From assembly GCA_002104945.1 (NCBI GenBank), contig MCFH01000224.1, forward strand, positions 1-14,242: a stretch of DNA of 14,242 nt, read 5' to 3'. Below, in pieces: positions 2,716 to 10,742 of the stretch. The translations under genes and the position numbers were made by a program. The stretch comes from Piromyces finnis finn (taxonomy: Eukaryota; Fungi; Neocallimastigomycota). Under the pieces are notes generated by a model. The model was given only the letters and a program-made list of their open reading frames with translations. It did not search any database and was not told where the DNA came from. How positions within the stretch are numbered: position 1 is the stretch's first letter; the number at the start of each line of letters is the position of its first letter.

Positions 2716-2788
2716 CACTCACGGCGGGACTCGAACCCGCAATCTTCAGATTAGAGTCTGACGCCCTATCCAATTAGGCTACGCGAGC
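2716..2788 (-). tRNA. trnR-TCT: tRNA-Arg (TCT); anticodon loop one base short in this sequence
   Basis: Minus strand GCTCGCG TA GCCT AATTGGATA GGGC G TCAGA CTCTAA TCTGA AGATT GCGGG TTCGAGT CCCGC CGTGAGT G. Acceptor stem, discriminator and variable loop match fungal tRNA-Arg(UCU) as recalled (GCTCGCG/CGTGAGTG, AGATT). Expected loop CTTCTAA is missing one T. Confidence 0.85.
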
Positions 2789-2796
2789 TTTAAAGA

Positions 2797-2856
2797 TTCC
2801 GCATCGGGGAATCGAACCCCGGCCGCCACGGTGAAAGCGTGTATGGACCATGCGGA
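2797..2856 (-). tRNA. trnE-TTC: tRNA-Glu (TTC) with D-loop deletion (pseudogene or assembly error)
   Basis: Minus strand TCCGCAT GGTCCA TACACG CT-TTC-AC CGTGG CGGC CGGGG TTCGATT CCCCG ATGCGGA A. Acceptor, anticodon loop and T arm are intact; 60 nt instead of ~72, with the D loop missing. Confidence 0.8.
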
Positions 2857-2862
2857 TAATCT

Positions 2863-2867
2863 TCATA
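2863..2867. repeat. Left target-site duplication TCATA
   Basis: TCATA directly before TGTAAG; identical to 9417-9421. Confidence 0.9.
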
Positions 2868-3323
2868 TGTAAGAATATTTGTAGCCATAAGTTGCCCACA
2901 AATATTCAATTGAACCATATATTCTGGTCACCATTTATTGGCCAATATATGCATAACCATATTAATGTTATTAATTAAATAGGAGTCTATTTGCTTTACC
3001 CAATCAAGTGGTAAAGAAATAAACTCATATAGTTAATAGTTAGTCAAACTAACGTTAATACTTTAGCGTTAGTATTAAAGTAAATTATAGCTATAATAAT
3101 AATTATGTATATAATTATAACTAATAAATAAAAGATAATAATATAATTATTAAGTAAATATATTTCATATAATTTATTGTATTATTTATTTTGTTTATAA
3201 TATTTATTTAGTTCTTTTATTATTTTTATAAAACTTTATTTAGTTATTAACTCGTATAGAGAGTATAACTACTTAATTAACTTTTATATTAACTTATTAA
3301 CTAACATATAAAAACCTTTTACA
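2868..3323 (+). repeat. 5' LTR (456 bp)
   Basis: TGTAAGAATATTTG...AAAACCTTTTACA; colinear with 8933-9416, differing mostly by single-base indels. Confidence 0.95.
3065..3075 (+). promoter_or_regulatory. Putative self-primer / transcript 5' end (start of R)
   Basis: AGCGTTAGTAT is the exact reverse complement of 3324-3334; also present in the 3' LTR at 9141-9151. Confidence 0.8.
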
Positions 3324-3334
3324 ATACTAACGCT
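3324..3334 (+). promoter_or_regulatory. Primer-binding site, self-priming type
   Basis: ATACTAACGCT abuts the LTR end, does not begin with TGG (so is not complementary to a tRNA CCA end), and pairs with LTR 3065-3075. Confidence 0.85.
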
Positions 3335-3605
3335 TTATAGTTAGTTCTTACGTTAGCTTAGTTTTATTAGGTTATGTTATTAAAATTCTTAAAAACATAT
3401 TTATTTTATTTAAATTATGGTTAATAATAATTATTTACATATTTTATATATTCAATATATATTTAAAGAAGTAAATTTATTATTAAAATAATATTTTTTA
3501 ATAGTTTAGCATTAAAATTCATTATTTGTAATTTTAAATTCATTATAACCATATTTTATTAATAAATTCTTTAATTTATTAAAAGAATTTATTTTCGAAT
3601 TAGAA

Positions 3606-5200
3606 ATGAAAAACGCAGGTAGTCGCTAACCCTCGGGGTGTCCATAATTGGACACAAAACATCATTCGTAAGGGACGGGACCGTCCTGACGCGGCGAGCG
3701 CGGATGGCATGGATGGTGTAGAGGGAATGTCACGGGTTCGAACCCGGTGCTTCTCGAAAGCACTGAGGTCGAATCTAATCAGAATTTACAGGTCAACAGG
3801 GGATTCTAGCCCACCCCTGTTGATCCTTCTTTCTTTTTTACTATAATATGAGGTAAACCAATGCAACACATTGAAGTTCTTCTTAATAGATGGGTTTCGG
3901 AAATATCTAGCCAGTTTGCTAGTATGGGAAACCGTCTGGGTGCTATGGAAGAACAACTTCGGGGTATTGAGGTTTACAAGAGCGAGATAAACGATGCTCT
4001 TCAGCAAAATTTGTGAAGTGGATCAAAGGTTGGAAGCAATGAGTCAGCTAGCCAAGTTAGCTTGGAAGAGCTGCATGCTGTGGAAAATGCCTTTACCGCA
4101 GAACATGAGGAAAGGTTACAAGACACCAGCAAGTGCTAAACAACCAAGAAACGTTGTACCGTCATCTAGTGCCTTTGTCTCTATAAAAAGAGCTTGAAGA
4201 AGAGATGGCCAGATTGAGGAGCAACGAAACGCTCTAGAAGAAAGAAAAATTGTTCGAGGCTAAAGTCGAAGCCATGAACAAAAGCTGAAGCCAGAGCTCA
4301 TGAAAGAACATCCTATCAACCGGTGGTATGGGTATCCTCATGGTGCTGGAACTAGTAGCAGCACCACCCTACGGATATTCCGAGGATGGGGACGTGAAGA
4401 TGTTCGATTGGCGAGTACATAGGTATGAAGAAAAGTGCCTATGTTTGATAATAATGGGATAGACTTAGAGGGTTTTCAAGAGAAGTGCTTACGTCATTTC
4501 AACGTTACCCATATGACTATGGTAACGACGAAAAGGCAAAGGTTAGCTTCATTGAAGATCATCTAGGTGGGAAGTATTGAGATGGTATAGACTTAGAGAG
4601 AGGATGTTGCAGCGTAGGATCCCGATGCTGAAAGACTATTCCTCACCTTCAAGATAAGTTTCCACCAGAGTCTCCCATGAACTCTGCAAGTCAAGTGCTT
4701 AAGCTCACACATGAGTGGGGAAAAGCATACGACTACTTGGAAGTTCAATGAATTGACGGAAACACTTGGCTTCCTGAAAATGTTAGGAGACAGGTTAATA
4801 CAACAGGTCAGCCTTCTGTCAGGGAAGCGTTCTATGATATCCCTGAACCGGAACGTACGCTGGAAACATTAGTGAAGTCTTGCTAAAGTGCGATGACCAC
4901 CAAGCAGTCTTCCGTAATGAAACCATAGAAAGTACGACAAAAGAGACGCCGACCACTATTATGGCCTTGTTGGATTCACGACCCATGTAGACCATCTAGA
5001 TGGGCTGAGTTAAAGCAGAAGAACACAAGCCAATAATAGCCTAAGTTGAGCAGACCAACACTCAGGCTTACGTAAAAAACAATACGGTGCCAAAGAACGT
5101 CGTGAATCCTTAATAGTCAGCTTTAGAAGAAGTTCTAGCTTCCAACCAAAGCAAGGACCTTCTAGTATGGGAAATAACCCATTACCTAAGGCTATGGCAA
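3606..5200 (+). CDS. gag: Gag (capsid) region, broken by multiple frameshifts in this sequence; boundaries approximate
   Basis: GC content jumps at the ATG at 3606. In-frame piece 3861-4013 reads MQHIEVLLNRWVSEISSQFASMGNRLGAMEEQLRGIEVYKSEINDALQQNL. Retrotransposon-gag-like fragments near 4540-4780 (KVSFIEDHLGG..LRWYRLRE; LKLTHEWGKAYDYLE.FNELTETLG) need frameshifts to join. No CCHC knuckle seen. Confidence 0.7.
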
Positions 5201-5269
5201 GTCAAACGACGGTCAATAACAGCTACTACAGTCAGAACCAACTAGTAGCTGAAATAATGCAAGAAGCAA

Positions 5270-5655
5270 CCTCGAGATATAAAAAGGGTAGAAGTTGTAT
5301 GATACTGGTTCCACTACAAACCTCATTCACCCAAATTAGCAAAGAAGCTCGGGTTAAAGGTAGTGGACAAACCAGCCATATTCAGAACTGTGAATGGTGA
5401 TATCGAGTTAAAGCAGTTCTCAGATGACTTGCAGTTGAAGTTATGGTTAACTCCATCTGGCGAACAAGAAGCTAAGCCATACTGCTTCAACACAAGTTGT
5501 CACCTATCCGACTACATGCCGGAGATAATCATTGTGGGACTGGGCTTCATGGATGAGCACTTTATCTACAGAGGTTATGATAAAGATGCACAAGTGAGGT
5601 ACTTCGTAGTAGATAATGATAAGGATAAGAACACACCAACAGTTATGGTGTAAAT
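5270..5655 (+). other. Aspartic protease domain
   Basis: DTG catalytic motif at 5301-5309, followed by IIVGLGFM-type C-terminal strand in ORF 5363-5653. Confidence 0.8.
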
Positions 5656-8600
5656 GACGGCGATATCTACTACTGTACTCAATTAAGTCCCATAACTACA
5701 GTTCTAATGCAAAAGCAAGAAGGCCTCTGTAACTGTAACCGCAGAAAACATCGAAGCCGAAATCGTGTGTAATGGTAGCCACAGGCTACAAAAAACCAGG
5801 GACGGAAGTTCCGGAGGGTTGGCATCGAGTTCCAACTTAGAGAAAACTTGTGTTTCAGTAGGGTTGGTACAAGAGTCAAACTTAGAGAAAAATCACATTT
5901 ACGTAGGGTTGGTACAGGAAGAAAACTTAAACGAAATCAACCTACACCTGAAGAAATCGTGGAGAAGTACTACCACAATTTCAAAGAAGCATTTAATGAA
6001 GAAATAGCTAACCAGCTACCAGAACACCGTCCTTACGACTGTAGATCGACCTGGAGCCGGATGCTAGTCTTCATAAAGGGCCTATATCCCTTCAATCCAG
6101 AAGAGGAAAAGCACTGAAGGAATATATTGAGGAAAACCTGGCAAAGGGCTTCATCAGGAAATCAGAGAGTCCTGCAGGTTATCCTGTGTTATTCGTGCCC
6201 AAAAAGAGTGGTGAAAGACGATTATGTACTGATTATAGGCGTCTTATAAGGTAACAGTGCGTAACTCCTTCCCTTTACCACTCATCAGTCAAGTGTTTGA
6301 GGCTATGAAAGGCGCGACTATCTTCTCCAAGTTGGATTTGAAGTCTGCCTACAACCTCGTGCGTATTCGTGAAGGTGACGAATACAAGACGGCATTCTCA
6401 ACCAAGTTTGGGCATTATGAATATCTAGTGATGCCATTTGGTTGACTAATGCTCCTGCCACGTTCCAAGGGTTCATTAATACGGTGCTGGCAGAAGAATC
6501 AACGATGCTGTCAAGTGTACTTGGATGATATCATCATCTACTCCAAGTCACTTGAAGAGCATGTAGGGCATGTAAAAGAGTCCTACAAAAGCTAATAGAT
6601 ATCGTCTAGTAGCTAAGTTAGCGAAGTGTGAGTTCCACAAGGAAAACTTGCATTCCTGGGTCATGTAGTTGGAAAATATGGTATTAAAACCGACCCAGAA
6701 AAGTTAAAAGCTGTAGCAAGTTGGCCACAACCAACCAACATTAAAGAACTACAGTCATTCCTCGGATTCTGCAACTATTATAGGAAGTTTATAAGGACTT
6801 CTCTAAGATAGCAAGGCCGTTATATGCGATGACGTCCAAAAGGTACAGTTCCTGTGGAATGAAGAACGCATCCAGGCGTTCGAGAAGTTAAAAGAAATGC
6901 TGTTGTCTCCACCAGTATTAGCATATCCTGACCATGACCGTCAGTTTATAGTGGAGTGCGACGCTAGTAACTACGCAGTGGTGGTGTATTATCACAACTA
7001 GGCGATGACAATGAACTACACCCTGTGTATTACTATTCCAAGAAACTTACGAAAGCAGAATCAACTACTCCATACGGAAAAGGAGTTGTTGGCTATTAGG
7101 AATGCTTTCATCGAGTGGCGACACCTGTTAATGGGTGCGAAACATAAGGTCCTAGTATATAGTGACCATAGGAATCTCCTGTTCGCCACAAACCACAGTT
7201 GTTGACAGCAAGACAGGCAAGATGGCAAGAGCTGTTTGCTGCATACAACTTCGAAATAATATATCGGCCAGGAAAAATGAATGGTAGAGCCGATATCCTA
7301 TCAAGAATGGTATCTCCAGAACAGGTACAACTGGAGATGGAAAAAGCTAGCCTCCTTCGACCTGAACAGGTAAAAGAATTTCCACCCGTGGAAGAAGAGT
7401 GCTATGCGGTGTTAGAAGTAAGCTTTGTGGGAGAACTGAAACAAGCTTACAACACGAATGAGCTTGCTAGGGAAATTAGAGATGGTCTTGACGCAAAAAG
7501 AGGCCACAAGCTCATCAAAAAGAAGTGGTTGATGGTTAATGGGTTGATTGTTAGAAAGGATGCACCAGAACGTACATATGTACCAAAGGTGTTAAGGGAA
7601 ACAATCATAAAACTTAACCACGATAGTGAAACAGCAGGTCATTTGGGAAAGATAAAACTTATGACCTGATAGCCAGAACTACTACTGGCCAAAAATGAAG
7701 GATGACATTGCGGGATATATTAAAGCTTGTACCATATGTTGTACCCAAAAGGACAACAGACACAAGCCGTACGGTAGCGCTGCTAGGGTAAAAGTTGCAG
7801 ACTTACCTTGGCAAGAAGTAGAAATCGACTTCCTGACGGACCTACCTATTAAGGAACGTAGAAAACCAGGTAGTAGTCCTCAGAACCCCAGAAGTCACTA
7901 GAAGAGGTTGTATCATGGTTTGTAGCGATAAGTTAACCAAAATGATACACTTAGTGGGATTTAGGAGTATGCCTACTGCTAAGAAACAGCCTTAGCATAC
8001 TTACAACATGTATTCAAGTTACATGGTTGTCCCAAATCGGTTACTACGGATCGTGGTGTCCAGTTCACTAGTAAGTTGTGGAAGGACATTATGGGGTTCT
8101 TTGGCGTAGAAGTAAACCTTGCTACTACTGGCCATCATGAAACAGTTGGTCAGGTAGAACGCAATAACTCCTACGTAAGTATGTACCTTAGATGCTTTGT
8201 GAAGACCTTTGATGACGACGAATGGTTGAAGTACTTGTACTTAGCTGAGTTCTGCTATAATAATGCAGTACACAGTTCTACTAAGCAGTCCCCATTCCTA
8301 GCCTTGTATAACTACCAGGTACATATGAACCTCAAGACTCAGAACTTGTCCACTCACTTGGTGAAGCTCCTATATTAGATAGCTTCGCTCACAACTTAGG
8401 TAACTTAAAGCACATGCTGGACATATCAAGAACACGGTTCTTAGACCACTTGGACCATAGAAGAGAACTTAACTACCCTAAATTAGGCTCCTGGATTTGG
8501 TGTGGTTAAGAAAACCAGAAAATTACAACCCTTTCCCTTCTACAAGCTACAAGCAAGAAAGTACGGTCCCTTCAAGGTTATTAGAATTGATGAAACCAAG

Positions 8601-8937
8601 CTTAACTACCGGTTGGATATCAGCAAGTCACCTTTCCCCAATGTCTACCCAGTGTTTCATATCAGTGAACTTGAACCCTACCATAACAAACCTGAAGAAC
8701 TAACACCTGCACCAGTGGGCTACCAGAAATTATCAAATCATGAATGCCAGAAGAAAGAGGATAACTACCATACTTAGCTACCTTTAGTGACTTTAGACAG
8801 AGTGGGTTGATGCTGATATCATTGACAAGAACTCCCACTATGATAAGCTACTCAAGGATTTCAAGATAAATGCTACCAGGAATTCATGGTTAGTGTCCAA
8901 AACCCTGCCTAGGTTTTCTCCTCAGGGGGCATTGTAA
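5270..8937 (+). CDS. pol: Pol polyprotein (protease-RT-RNase H-integrase), frameshifted in this sequence
   Basis: [11 protein letters not shown] (D at 5301); LPEHRPYDC; PLPLI...[10 protein letters not shown]...KTAF...YEYLVMPFG; YLDD (6518-6529); ECDASNYA (D at 6960); EKELLAI...SDHRNL; ADILSR; integrase motifs below. The last frame as read ends at TAA 8935-8937 inside the 3' LTR. Confidence 0.95.
6000..7305 (+). other. Reverse transcriptase + RNase H domains
   Basis: Ty3/Gypsy RT motifs ([33 protein letters not shown]) and RNase H motifs (DAS, EKELLA, SDH, ADILSR). Confidence 0.95.
7540..8700 (+). other. Integrase: HHCC zinc finger, DDE core, GPY/F domain
   Basis: HDSETAGH (H at 7619) ... 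CTIC; IDF (D at 7827); TDRGVQF (D at 8049); GQVERNN (E at 8157); KYGPFKV (8559-8579); [10 protein letters not shown]. Confidence 0.93.
8723..8865 (+). other. Degenerate chromodomain-like C-terminal extension of integrase
   Basis: Joining across apparent indels gives PEIIKS...ERG...[31 protein letters not shown], echoing the chromodomain pattern (E.I...R..G...YLV.W......TWE....L......LL.EF). Confidence 0.5.
8924..8929 (+). promoter_or_regulatory. Polypurine tract
   Basis: AGGGGG three bases before the 3' LTR TGT; may be shortened by homopolymer error. Confidence 0.75.
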
Positions 8938-9416
8938 GAAATATTTGTGGCCATAAGTTTGCCCACAAATATTTCAATTGAAACCATATATTCTGGTCAC
9001 CATTTATTGGCCAAATATATGCATAACCATATATTAATGGTTATTAATTAATAGGAAGTCTATTTGCTTACCCAATCAAGTGGTAAAGAAAATAAACTCA
9101 TATAGTTAATAGTATAGTCAAAACTAACGTTAAATACTTTAGCGTTAGTATTAAAGTAATTAATAGCTATATAATAATAATGTATATAATATAACTAATA
9201 AATAAAAGATAATAATTATAATAATTATTTAAGTAAATAATATTTCATATTAATATTTATCGTATTATATTTATTTTGTGTTATAATATTTATTTTAGTT
9301 CTTTTATATTTTTTATAAACTTTATTTAGTTATTAACTCGTATAGAGAGGTAATAACTAACTTAATTAACTTGTTATATTTAACTTATTAACTAACATAT
9401 ATAAAAACCTTTTACA
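8933..9416 (+). repeat. 3' LTR (484 bp)
   Basis: TGTAAGAAATATTTG...AAAACCTTTTACA; matches the 5' LTR throughout. Confidence 0.95.
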
Positions 9417-9421
9417 TCATA
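9417..9421. repeat. Right target-site duplication TCATA
   Basis: TCATA directly after TTTTACA. Confidence 0.9.
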
Positions 9422-9474
9422 TGTAATCTAATATATAATTTTAATTATATATGCAAATCTTAACTACAATGTAT

Positions 9475-9675
9475 TGTTACCGATTTCACTTCAGTTAGGT
9501 CGGAATACACATATTACCCTAAGTTTATTAATTTAATAAATAAATGAATAATAAATATTTTAAATAAATAACATTTATTAATTAACTTTATTTATTAATA
9601 AATTTTATTTAAAGAAAAATTTTATTTAAAGAAAATTTTTATTTATTAAATATTATTATATTAGAGTAAATATTA
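9475..9675 (-). mobile_element. Truncated inverted copy of the 218-bp TIR element (one TIR missing)
   Basis: Matches the reverse complement of 10742 back to about 10558 and stops at GAGTAAATATTA, before the second TIR. Carries an internal 17-bp tandem duplication (9601-9617/9618-9634). Confidence 0.88.
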
Positions 9676-9676
9676 A

Positions 9677-10525
9677 TGTAATGAACTCTCGAAATCCCTA
9701 ATGATAGGAATTTTCTCGAGTATTATACTATTCTAATATTAGGAATACATTTTAAATTTAATACATGACTATTATTTATATTAATTAACTATTCTATAAA
9801 TTAATTATATATTAATTATATATGACTTTTCACTCGTGTTAAATTTAATAATTATAAAGTCATGTTATCAATCATTTGTAGAAGGAATGATTATTTTATA
9901 ATTTAGTTTTATTTCCTTCTTAATCAATGAATAAAGAGATATTAATTCAAATTTTAATTTTAATAATATAAATCTTAACAATTATAATTAATTAATATCT
10001 CTTAAATATTATTTAATTATGTTTTATAATAAATATTTCTAATTAATTAAACGAATAGAACACTAATTAAATAATAATCATGAATCCACTAATATTCATG
10101 ACATTGCCCGTCTACAAAATTGAATTCTAGGCAATTTTATAAATTAATTTAATAATGAAATATATAAATCTTCATGAGACAACCATTAGTTTAATTTGTA
10201 TAATTTAAATTATATCCACAATGTGGATGTGGAGTTCTACATTTAGTAGAGGATAGATAGTATTACTTATTTTAGTAGTCCTTATTCAAAGATAGATTAA
10301 TAACTTTCCCAACATTCAAATTCAAAAATCTCATAATTCCATTTCAAATTCCACCAAATTCATTCTCAAAAATTTCCAAATATATGTTAACATATGTGGC
10401 GTAGGTGGCGTTTATTTCTTTAATAATGTATTTGTACATTCCAAGGCAACTTGAAGTCCACAAAACCTTAAGATCTAACTAGTAGTTTGAAAGTCCCAAG
10501 TCTGTAGTAGAGTGGAGAGTTCATT
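9677..10525. mobile_element. Putative ~850-bp non-coding element (solo LTR or MITE) with short TIRs
   Basis: Starts TGTAATGAACTCTC (9677-9690). GAGAGTTCATT (10515-10525) is the reverse complement minus the terminal ACA. Both ends abut the flanking TIR-element copies. Confidence 0.5.
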
Positions 10526-10742
10526 GTTACGGATTTCACTTCAGTTAGGTCGGAATATAATATTTACTCTAATTAATAATATTTAATAAATAAAATTTTC
10601 TTTAAATAAAAATTTATTATAAATAAAGTTAATTAATAAAATGTTATTTATTTAAAATATTTATTTATTCATTTATTTATTAAATTAATAAACTTAGGGT
10701 AAATATGTATATTCCGACCTAACTGAAGTGAAATCCGTAACA
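10525..10742. mobile_element. 218-bp MITE-like element with TGT...ACA termini and 35-bp perfect TIRs
   Basis: TGTTACGGATTTCACTTCAGTTAGGTCGGAATATA (10525-10559) and its exact reverse complement (10708-10742); the TIR extends imperfectly to ~49 bp. A second copy lies at 9475. Confidence 0.9.

Follow-up and report, generated by a model that had tools for sequence, protein, structure and literature searches.

The window analysed here is an entire contig of the Piromyces finnis assembly (C140; 14,242 nucleotides, or 14 kb), which is very AT-rich, with a GC content of 28%. The assembly searched alongside it comprises 56,455,805 bases in 232 contigs. The window holds a long terminal repeat (LTR) retrotransposon of 6.5 kb on the plus strand (2868-9416), with both LTRs bounded by TG...CA, inserted beside a tandem pair of tRNA genes on the minus strand (Table 1). 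The gap between the 5′ end of tRNA-Glu and the LTR measures 11 nt (2857-2867). Direct reading confirms the geometry given in the first-pass annotation, namely an LTR that starts 11 nt upstream of tRNA-Glu, is oriented divergently from it and has its target site duplication (TSD) at -7 to -11. The LTR boundaries proposed there, 2868-3323, also hold, but the length that they enclose is an assembly error. The gene itself derives from tRNA-Glu(UUC), with its 5′-most base at 2856, but it is damaged, 10 nt of the D arm being gone.

Table 1. Coordinates of the retrotransposon and of its target in the window.
Feature	Position	Strand	Basis
tRNA-Arg(UCU), tandem partner of the Glu gene	2716..2788	-	ARAGORN; Rfam 59.5 bits
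tRNA-Glu(UUC)-derived gene, the target	2798..2856	-	alignment with the intact Glu-Arg pair and the C62 copy
Left TSD copy, TCATA	2863..2867	.	read directly; -7 to -11 of tRNA-Glu
5′ LTR, TGTAAG...TTACA, 456 nt here, 494 nt in polished copies	2868..3323	+	LTR alignment
AGCGTTAGTAT within the LTR, complement of the primer site	3065..3075	+	exact 11-nt complement; nt 212-222 of the polished-copy LTR
Primer-binding site ATACTAACGCT, immediately after the LTR (offset 0)	3324..3334	+	11-nt exact complement
Internal region: leader and one gag-pol ORF, PR-RT-RNase H-IN-SH3-predicted degenerate chromodomain	3335..8912	+	Pfam domains, polished copies
Polypurine tract AGGGGG then CAT, abutting the 3′ LTR	8924..8932	+	read directly
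3′ LTR	8933..9416	+	LTR alignment
Right TSD copy, TCATA	9417..9421	.	read directly

Over 10 kb, the alignment of the window with contig C62 contains 1 mismatch and has 324 gap positions, and on this basis C140 is judged to be a badly polished duplicate of the C62 locus. Such a poor duplicate accounts for the short 5′ LTR, the fragmented open reading frames (ORFs) and the defective anticodon loop of tRNA-Arg as assembly errors. In the window no ORF exceeds 156 aa, and gag-pol is broken by assembly indels, its stop being the TAG at 8910-8912; the C62 copy of the same insertion has an ORF of 1801 aa and LTRs that differ by 2 mismatches. The anticodon loop of tRNA-Arg is one base short in C140 only, where ARAGORN labels the gene 'tRNA-???', and the C62 copy is intact (69.9 bits, Rfam). 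Measured against an intact Glu-Arg pair (C184), tRNA-Glu lacks the 10 nt of the D arm in C62, C15 and C32. Neither ARAGORN nor Rfam calls tRNA-Glu in the window itself, and the C62 copy scores 34.1 bits with the Rfam tRNA model (cut-off 29); its B box GGTTCGATTCC is intact and most of the A box is retained. From these alignments we regard the target as a damaged tRNA gene whose D-arm defect, unlike the other defects of the window, is real.

Full polished copies of the element are 6.7-6.9 kb long and encode one ORF of 1727-1861 aa. Pfam places Asp_protease_2 at residues 579-623, RVT_1 at 918-1077, RT_RNaseH at 1141-1272, Integrase_H2C2 and rve at 1384-1570, and SH3_Tf2-1, an SH3 domain of the Tf2 type, at 1691-1754. 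The pol order protease-RT-RNase H-integrase assigns the element to the Ty3/gypsy group. Every 3′ LTR is preceded by AGGGGGGCAT, and TSDs of 5 bp are seen on both sides in 13 copies, seven of which lie at tRNA junctions. In nine polished full copies the two LTRs differ by 0-2 mismatches, and seven of the nine retain the long ORF, which together indicate a young family; from these sequence features it is probably still active. ORF length changes by 30-aa steps, and a short repeat sits between protease and RT. At L033:2593-8088 this is a repeat of ~15 aa (..NLEK..VSVGLVQS..) at ORF residues ~790-860, and by its position and length it very probably accounts for the ORFs of 1801, 1831 and 1861 aa in near-identical copies.

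The primer site shows no complementarity to any tRNA 3′ end, and its exact complement lies within the LTR of the element itself. Reverse transcription is thus most likely self-primed, of the Tf1/Tj1 type, and AGCGTTAGTAT, which begins at LTR nt 212, would probably form the first 11 nt of the transcript and mark the start of R. Ty3 is generally described as primed by initiator tRNA-Met, whereas the family studied here has a self-priming site. Self-priming has been described for Tf1 and proposed for Tj1 (PMC4600332).

The insertion preference of the family was examined throughout the assembly. Scored matches to the LTR numbered 43, and a pattern consisting of its first 34 nt occurred 216 times (0 for the reversed control). 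Searches with patterns that also report the DNA upstream of the LTR, and that exclude the polypurine tract of 3′ LTRs, returned 125 flanks of 5′ or solo LTRs. The survey of insertion distances, which the first-pass annotation had proposed, gave a sharp peak: 23 of these flanks, with 18 distinct gap sequences and nine tRNA types, adjoin the 5′ end of an opposite-strand tRNA gene at a gap of 11-13 nt. With each tRNA numbered with A14 in place, the gap at the 18 distinct sites is 11 nt in five, 12 nt in eleven and 13 nt in two; the gaps derived from ARAGORN agree in the fetched loci, except for Ser-UGA, which the program started one base early. The targets are Glu (2 loci), elongator Met, initiator-like Met, Trp (4), Cys (3), Ser-UGA, Ser-GCU, Arg-UCU (4) and Gly-UCC, and insertion leaves the tRNA genes intact. 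At these real tRNA genes, 18-20 nt separate the LTR edge from the A box downstream. The distance between the integration site and the internal A-box promoter is fixed. A 3-nt interval in one orientation at up to ~2900 tRNA candidates in 56.5 Mb represents at most 8e-5 of sites, so that ~0.01 hits are expected by chance per 125 insertions versus at least 16-18 independent ones observed, which bears out the earlier judgement that chance placement is unlikely. No 5S or U6 gene was recognised among the 125 flanks, which were read by eye, and ~10-15 of them fit neither a tRNA nor a recognisable LTR terminus.

A pattern of this kind could in principle arise without targeting, either through random insertion followed by survival near tRNA genes or through the spread of one junction by duplication or assembly redundancy. 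Several junctions indeed occur 2-4 times on different contigs (C140/C62/C15/C32; C184 twice; C159 twice), and the genome has many redundant small contigs. Nevertheless, the 18 gap sequences and nine tRNA types are what remains after identical flanks have been collapsed, all fall within 3 nt, and seven of the 18 junctions have their own TSDs at both ends. Neither single-nucleotide precision nor a 13:1 orientation bias is within the reach of selection, and purging cannot account for the pattern in copies so young that their LTRs are identical, which leaves an origin without targeting very improbable. Even harder to credit is that the element reads a DNA motif upstream of tRNA genes instead of a protein complex. 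The gaps are AT-rich and often T-rich beside the LTR, but AT-richness is genome-wide, as the base composition of the window illustrates, and no common motif is found either in the TSD 5-mers (TCATA, TTATC, ATTTT, GCGTC, GAAAT, GTTAA and others) or in the 18 gap sequences; moreover, the distance to the A box is constant even at sites with unrelated flanks, described below.

Besides the genuine tRNA genes, 22 of the 125 flanks adjoin tRNA-derived modules, all with U3 toward the module. Each of these ~175-nt modules has its B box GTTCGAGACC 44 nt beyond an A-box-like TGTCTTAGTGG and also contains a T run and an (ATTTT)n tail. The LTR edge lies 17-22 nt from the module A box, with a mode of 20. 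Because the modules share this tRNA-like spacing in spite of unrelated flanks, the constant is the distance to the internal promoter and not the flank sequence. Rfam found neither a tRNA nor any other family in the odd flanks L018, L029, L019, L014, L027 and L021, so that tRNA-like modules there are to be read as decayed.

Two further arrangements concern such promoter-like sequences. At L037:8901-9869 (G000:C192), the ~175-nt module is embedded in RT-coding DNA of another gypsy element and forms tandem units of 216 nt, in which 42 nt of RT sequence accompany the module; two neighbouring units each carry an independent insertion of the studied family, 2 nt apart. At L021:1383-1500 (G000:C198) and G000:C196:47058, the family's own gag site ...TTCG/TAAGGG adjoins the LTR edge, at two places 3 nt apart. 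A palindromic B-box-like GGGTTCGAACCC is located 72 nt downstream of this gag site, and a solo LTR is found 36 nt from the opposite side of the palindrome. By their sequence, the gag-site junctions may reflect self-targeting via an internal B box, or they may be a deletion derivative.

The orientation of the insertions is strongly biased. U3 faces the target in 40 copies (18 at tRNA genes and 22 at modules) and U5 in three, so that ~93% of directly adjacent copies, or ~13:1, have element and tRNA transcribed divergently. No tRNA was present in the 24 flanks of an initial survey of U5 ends; a broader pattern, requiring a B box 58-86 nt past the LTR end, gave three matches. The first, a full-length copy, lies 11 nt upstream of tRNA-Ser-GCU (C159:464254-471063, TSD ATAAG), the second is a solo LTR 12 nt upstream of tRNA-Arg on C176 (TSD AAAAT, checked in L065), and the third lies at tRNA-Arg on C207. 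These three copies rule out the absolute orientation that had been based on the 24 negative flanks, and the bias is therefore strong but not absolute.

A large part of the surveyed flanks, ~70 of the 125, end in the terminus (...CA) of another LTR family, 0-10 nt from the studied LTR. At least 12 flanks belong to the ...TTTATCA class, which reads ...AATTATTTATCA followed by T, TT or G. In L066 the order is the 5′ end of tRNA-Arg, 12 nt, a solo LTR of ~780 nt from the other family, TT and the studied LTR; this is a stack in which the newest element is nearest the gene. By extension from L066, the single case traced, most of the ~70 flanks may be read as stacks. In all five checkable copies (L014/L013, L035, L027, C165 and C190), the 1-4 bases between the foreign terminus and the studied LTR are the end of the copy's own TSD, which indicates that the neighbour was inserted later, cutting 1-4 nt further from the tRNA. 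An older LTR often begins (TG...) to the right of the right-hand TSD. In the window, the flank immediately after the TSD (9422-9470) begins TGTAATCT; by sequence, an older LTR fragment, formerly at -12 of tRNA-Glu, probably begins at 9422, which would make the window itself a small stack.

An alternative view of the other-LTR flanks as 'head-to-head landing pads' was partly rejected: one class is a plain stack (L066), and the flanks lying 8 nt from the neighbour's terminus include minority-orientation copies (L065 and C159:464254-471063). At L039:1-2090 (G000:C219), the element beside the studied U3 has an ORF that points away from the junction, in a head-to-head arrangement; either this neighbour comes from a family also inserted in the opposite orientation, or it is an earlier resident joined by a minority-orientation copy of the studied family. 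On the minus strand at G000:C198:57764, the end of the studied LTR is followed by ATT, ten G and GC-rich DNA that is atypical of the genome.

The integrase was compared with proteins of known structure in order to characterize its C-terminal region. Its best match in the PDB is 7q5b, the Ty3 integrase complexed with TFIIIB on a tRNA gene (E 7e-28). The alignment extends through the SH3 domain, beyond which no sequence identity to the Ty3 integrase is detectable in the PDB search. Pfam gives no hit for the last 77 residues, and no Chromo domain in the studied protein even at E 10. A language-model search places these 77 residues among chromodomain clusters (score 0.92), and a full HMMER scan finds Pfam Chromo at the tail position in 27 of 41 homologues. 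The AlphaFold model of the last 175 aa, built from the 41-sequence alignment (pLDDT 90), begins with a long helix, continues into an SH3 barrel and ends in three strands and a helix; a single-sequence model of the tail was discarded (pLDDT 42). With the whole module, the top Foldseek matches are chains C and B of 7q5b, at weak E values (3e-3 and 8e-3) and probabilities of 1.0 and 0.99, and these chains match ~140-170 of the 175 modelled residues. With the tail, Foldseek retrieves the chromodomains of Rhino, CBX5 and Oxpecker (TM 0.74-0.80, rmsd 1.4-1.6 A). The language-model search, the Pfam Chromo matches of homologues and the AlphaFold model all point to a predicted degenerate chromodomain in the tail. 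In a small alignment the aromatic cage is lost, position 1 being aliphatic and the other two unconserved in close relatives (F and F in the studied protein), and a tryptophan past the third strand and the long C-terminal helix are kept. The relatives consist of one protein from Neocallimastix lanati and others from metagenomes; an N. lanati locus and metagenome contigs carrying relatives show no LTR pair and no tRNA.

Taken together, the family is with high probability a young and probably active Ty3/gypsy group of the chromovirus type, whose integrase targets the Pol III pre-initiation complex assembled at tRNA genes. The tether would be TFIIIB (TBP/Brf1), contacted by the module of helix, SH3 and predicted degenerate chromodomain, by analogy with Ty3, in which contacts of the SH3 domain with TBP and of a vestigial chromodomain with Brf1 fix the site (PMC8632968). 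Insertion puts the LTR edge 18-20 nt before the A box and 11-13 nt upstream of the mature 5′ end, with a 5-bp duplication, and takes the same position at tRNA-derived, SINE-like promoter modules; the inserted cDNA would most likely have been self-primed as in Tf1/Tj1. The host TBP gene has at least four exons.

The targeting could also be real and the tether be something other than TFIIIB, such as TFIIIC, a Pol III subunit (as in the pairing of the Ty1 integrase with AC40) or a different factor placed by the A box. The data show the A-box distance only; TFIIIC contacts the A and B boxes directly and sets the orientation of Ty3 (PMC5911963, PMC8632968), and the chromodomain-like tail is conserved in the clade, yet its sequence is unlike that of Ty3. 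The strong orientation bias in turn requires an asymmetric contact. Against this, Pol III tethering of the Ty1 type spreads over ~1 kb and not within +/-1 nt (PMC5911963), a narrow interval just upstream of the coding region is the signature of Ty3 and Tj1, and the closest solved integrase, with the same C-terminal module, is that of Ty3. We therefore consider a tether other than TFIIIB unlikely, and retain TFIIIB as the candidate.

The Ty3/gypsy elements that a 2018 review gives as directed to tRNA genes are Ty3, Ty3p, Tj1, Tca8, Tyl3, Ylt1, Tyl6, DGLT-A and Skipper-2, and their hosts are ascomycete yeasts or Dictyostelium only (PMC5911963). A literature search on Neocallimastigomycota or anaerobic fungi together with retrotransposons found nothing on target choice, in line with the suggestion of the first-pass annotation that the family is undescribed in this lineage. 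That annotation had also called the insertion Ty3-like, a description that is apt for the domain order and for the best solved integrase relative, which is that of Ty3, but less so for the life style, which is nearer to Tj1/Tf1 in self-priming and orientation bias.

As a Ty3/gypsy element that targets Pol III genes, the family is closest in behaviour to Tj1 of Schizosaccharomyces japonicus, which is likewise a Ty3/gypsy element, inserts 5-11 bp upstream of the mature tRNA 5′ end, has a primer site that complements the 5′ end of its own RNA and shows an orientation preference (PMC4600332). The preference is of opposite sense: all 16 of 16 Tj1 inserts share the tRNA gene's direction (PMC4600332), whereas ~93% of the studied copies run opposite to it. 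In 2015, the authors of the Tj1 study knew of no other wild-type LTR element of fixed orientation (PMC4600332). Tj1 further differs in its host, an ascomycete yeast, in its ORF organisation, the studied family having a single ORF, and in that its targeting was shown by de novo integration, whereas the studied family is known from genomic copies. With Ty3 of Saccharomyces cerevisiae the family shares the Ty3/gypsy domain order, the 5-bp duplication and probably a landing site a few bp from the Pol III start, and its modelled tail of helix, SH3 and chromodomain matches those chains of Ty3 through which TBP and Brf1 are contacted. However, Ty3 has two ORFs, GAG3 and POL3, joined by a +1 frameshift, in contrast to the one ORF of 1727-1861 aa in seven polished copies, and it uses both orientations (PMC5911963) as against 40 and 3 here.

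The elements of social amoebae offer a second set of parallels. DGLT-A of Dictyostelium and other dictyostelids also has a single gag-pol ORF and inserts 10-33 bp upstream of tRNA coding regions, where later insertions displace earlier ones (PMC5006619). Unlike the studied family, it integrates in either orientation and over a wider range, lacks a chromodomain, having a 32-aa integrase extension, and resides in an amoebozoan host (PMC5006619, PMC5911963). Skipper-2, also from Dictyostelium, resembles the family as a chromovirus with a diverged chromodomain that has switched to tRNA genes (PMC5006619), but it inserts 7-136 bp downstream of them, whereas the studied family sits upstream at -12.

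A more ambitious reading can be proposed tentatively, as a possibility that falls short of being likely. Pol III targeting may have arisen independently in a chromovirus of an early-diverging fungus, with the cage-less chromodomain serving as a dock for TFIIIB; this dock would be asymmetric and would set the orientation at ~13:1, as a mirror image of Tj1, and promoter mimics, either SINE-like or borne by LTRs, would act as extra landing pads. If the last part is true, mobile elements multiply their own safe sites.

Integration targeted at tRNA genes is the textbook example of 'safe' site choice and is documented mainly in ascomycete yeasts and social amoebae. The family described here adds a third, distant lineage, with ~200 LTR copies, many of them full-length with identical LTRs and open ORFs. 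These copies form a natural data set on the proposed re-tuning of an integrase C-terminus, composed of SH3 and the predicted degenerate chromodomain, from chromatin to TFIIIB, and likewise on the determinants of insertion orientation. They account for part of the repeat architecture of anaerobic fungi, namely LTR stacks at tRNA genes and redundant small contigs, and the insertion sites can serve as an approximate guide to the Pol III start sites of this organism.

The remainder of the window contains several other repeats. A tRNA-Trp(CCA) gene occupies 738-809 on the plus strand, and a different LTR-like repeat (640-713) terminates 24 nt upstream of its 5′ end. This repeat reads ...ATTCATTTATAGAATTAAGG...CCATAACA, with 713 as its last base, and its family adjoins studied LTRs elsewhere (C176:84557, C190:19103 and C166:470213). 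A palindromic unit of 218 bp at 10525-10742 has perfect terminal inverted repeats of 35 nt (TGTTACGGATTTCACTTCAG...), with a third copy of the arm at 9475-9515; from its structure, the unit is classed as either MITE-like or derived from an LTR terminus. The AT-rich spacer that separates the tRNA genes carries 48-nt tandem repeats, in five copies at 1562-1850 and in two at 506-601.
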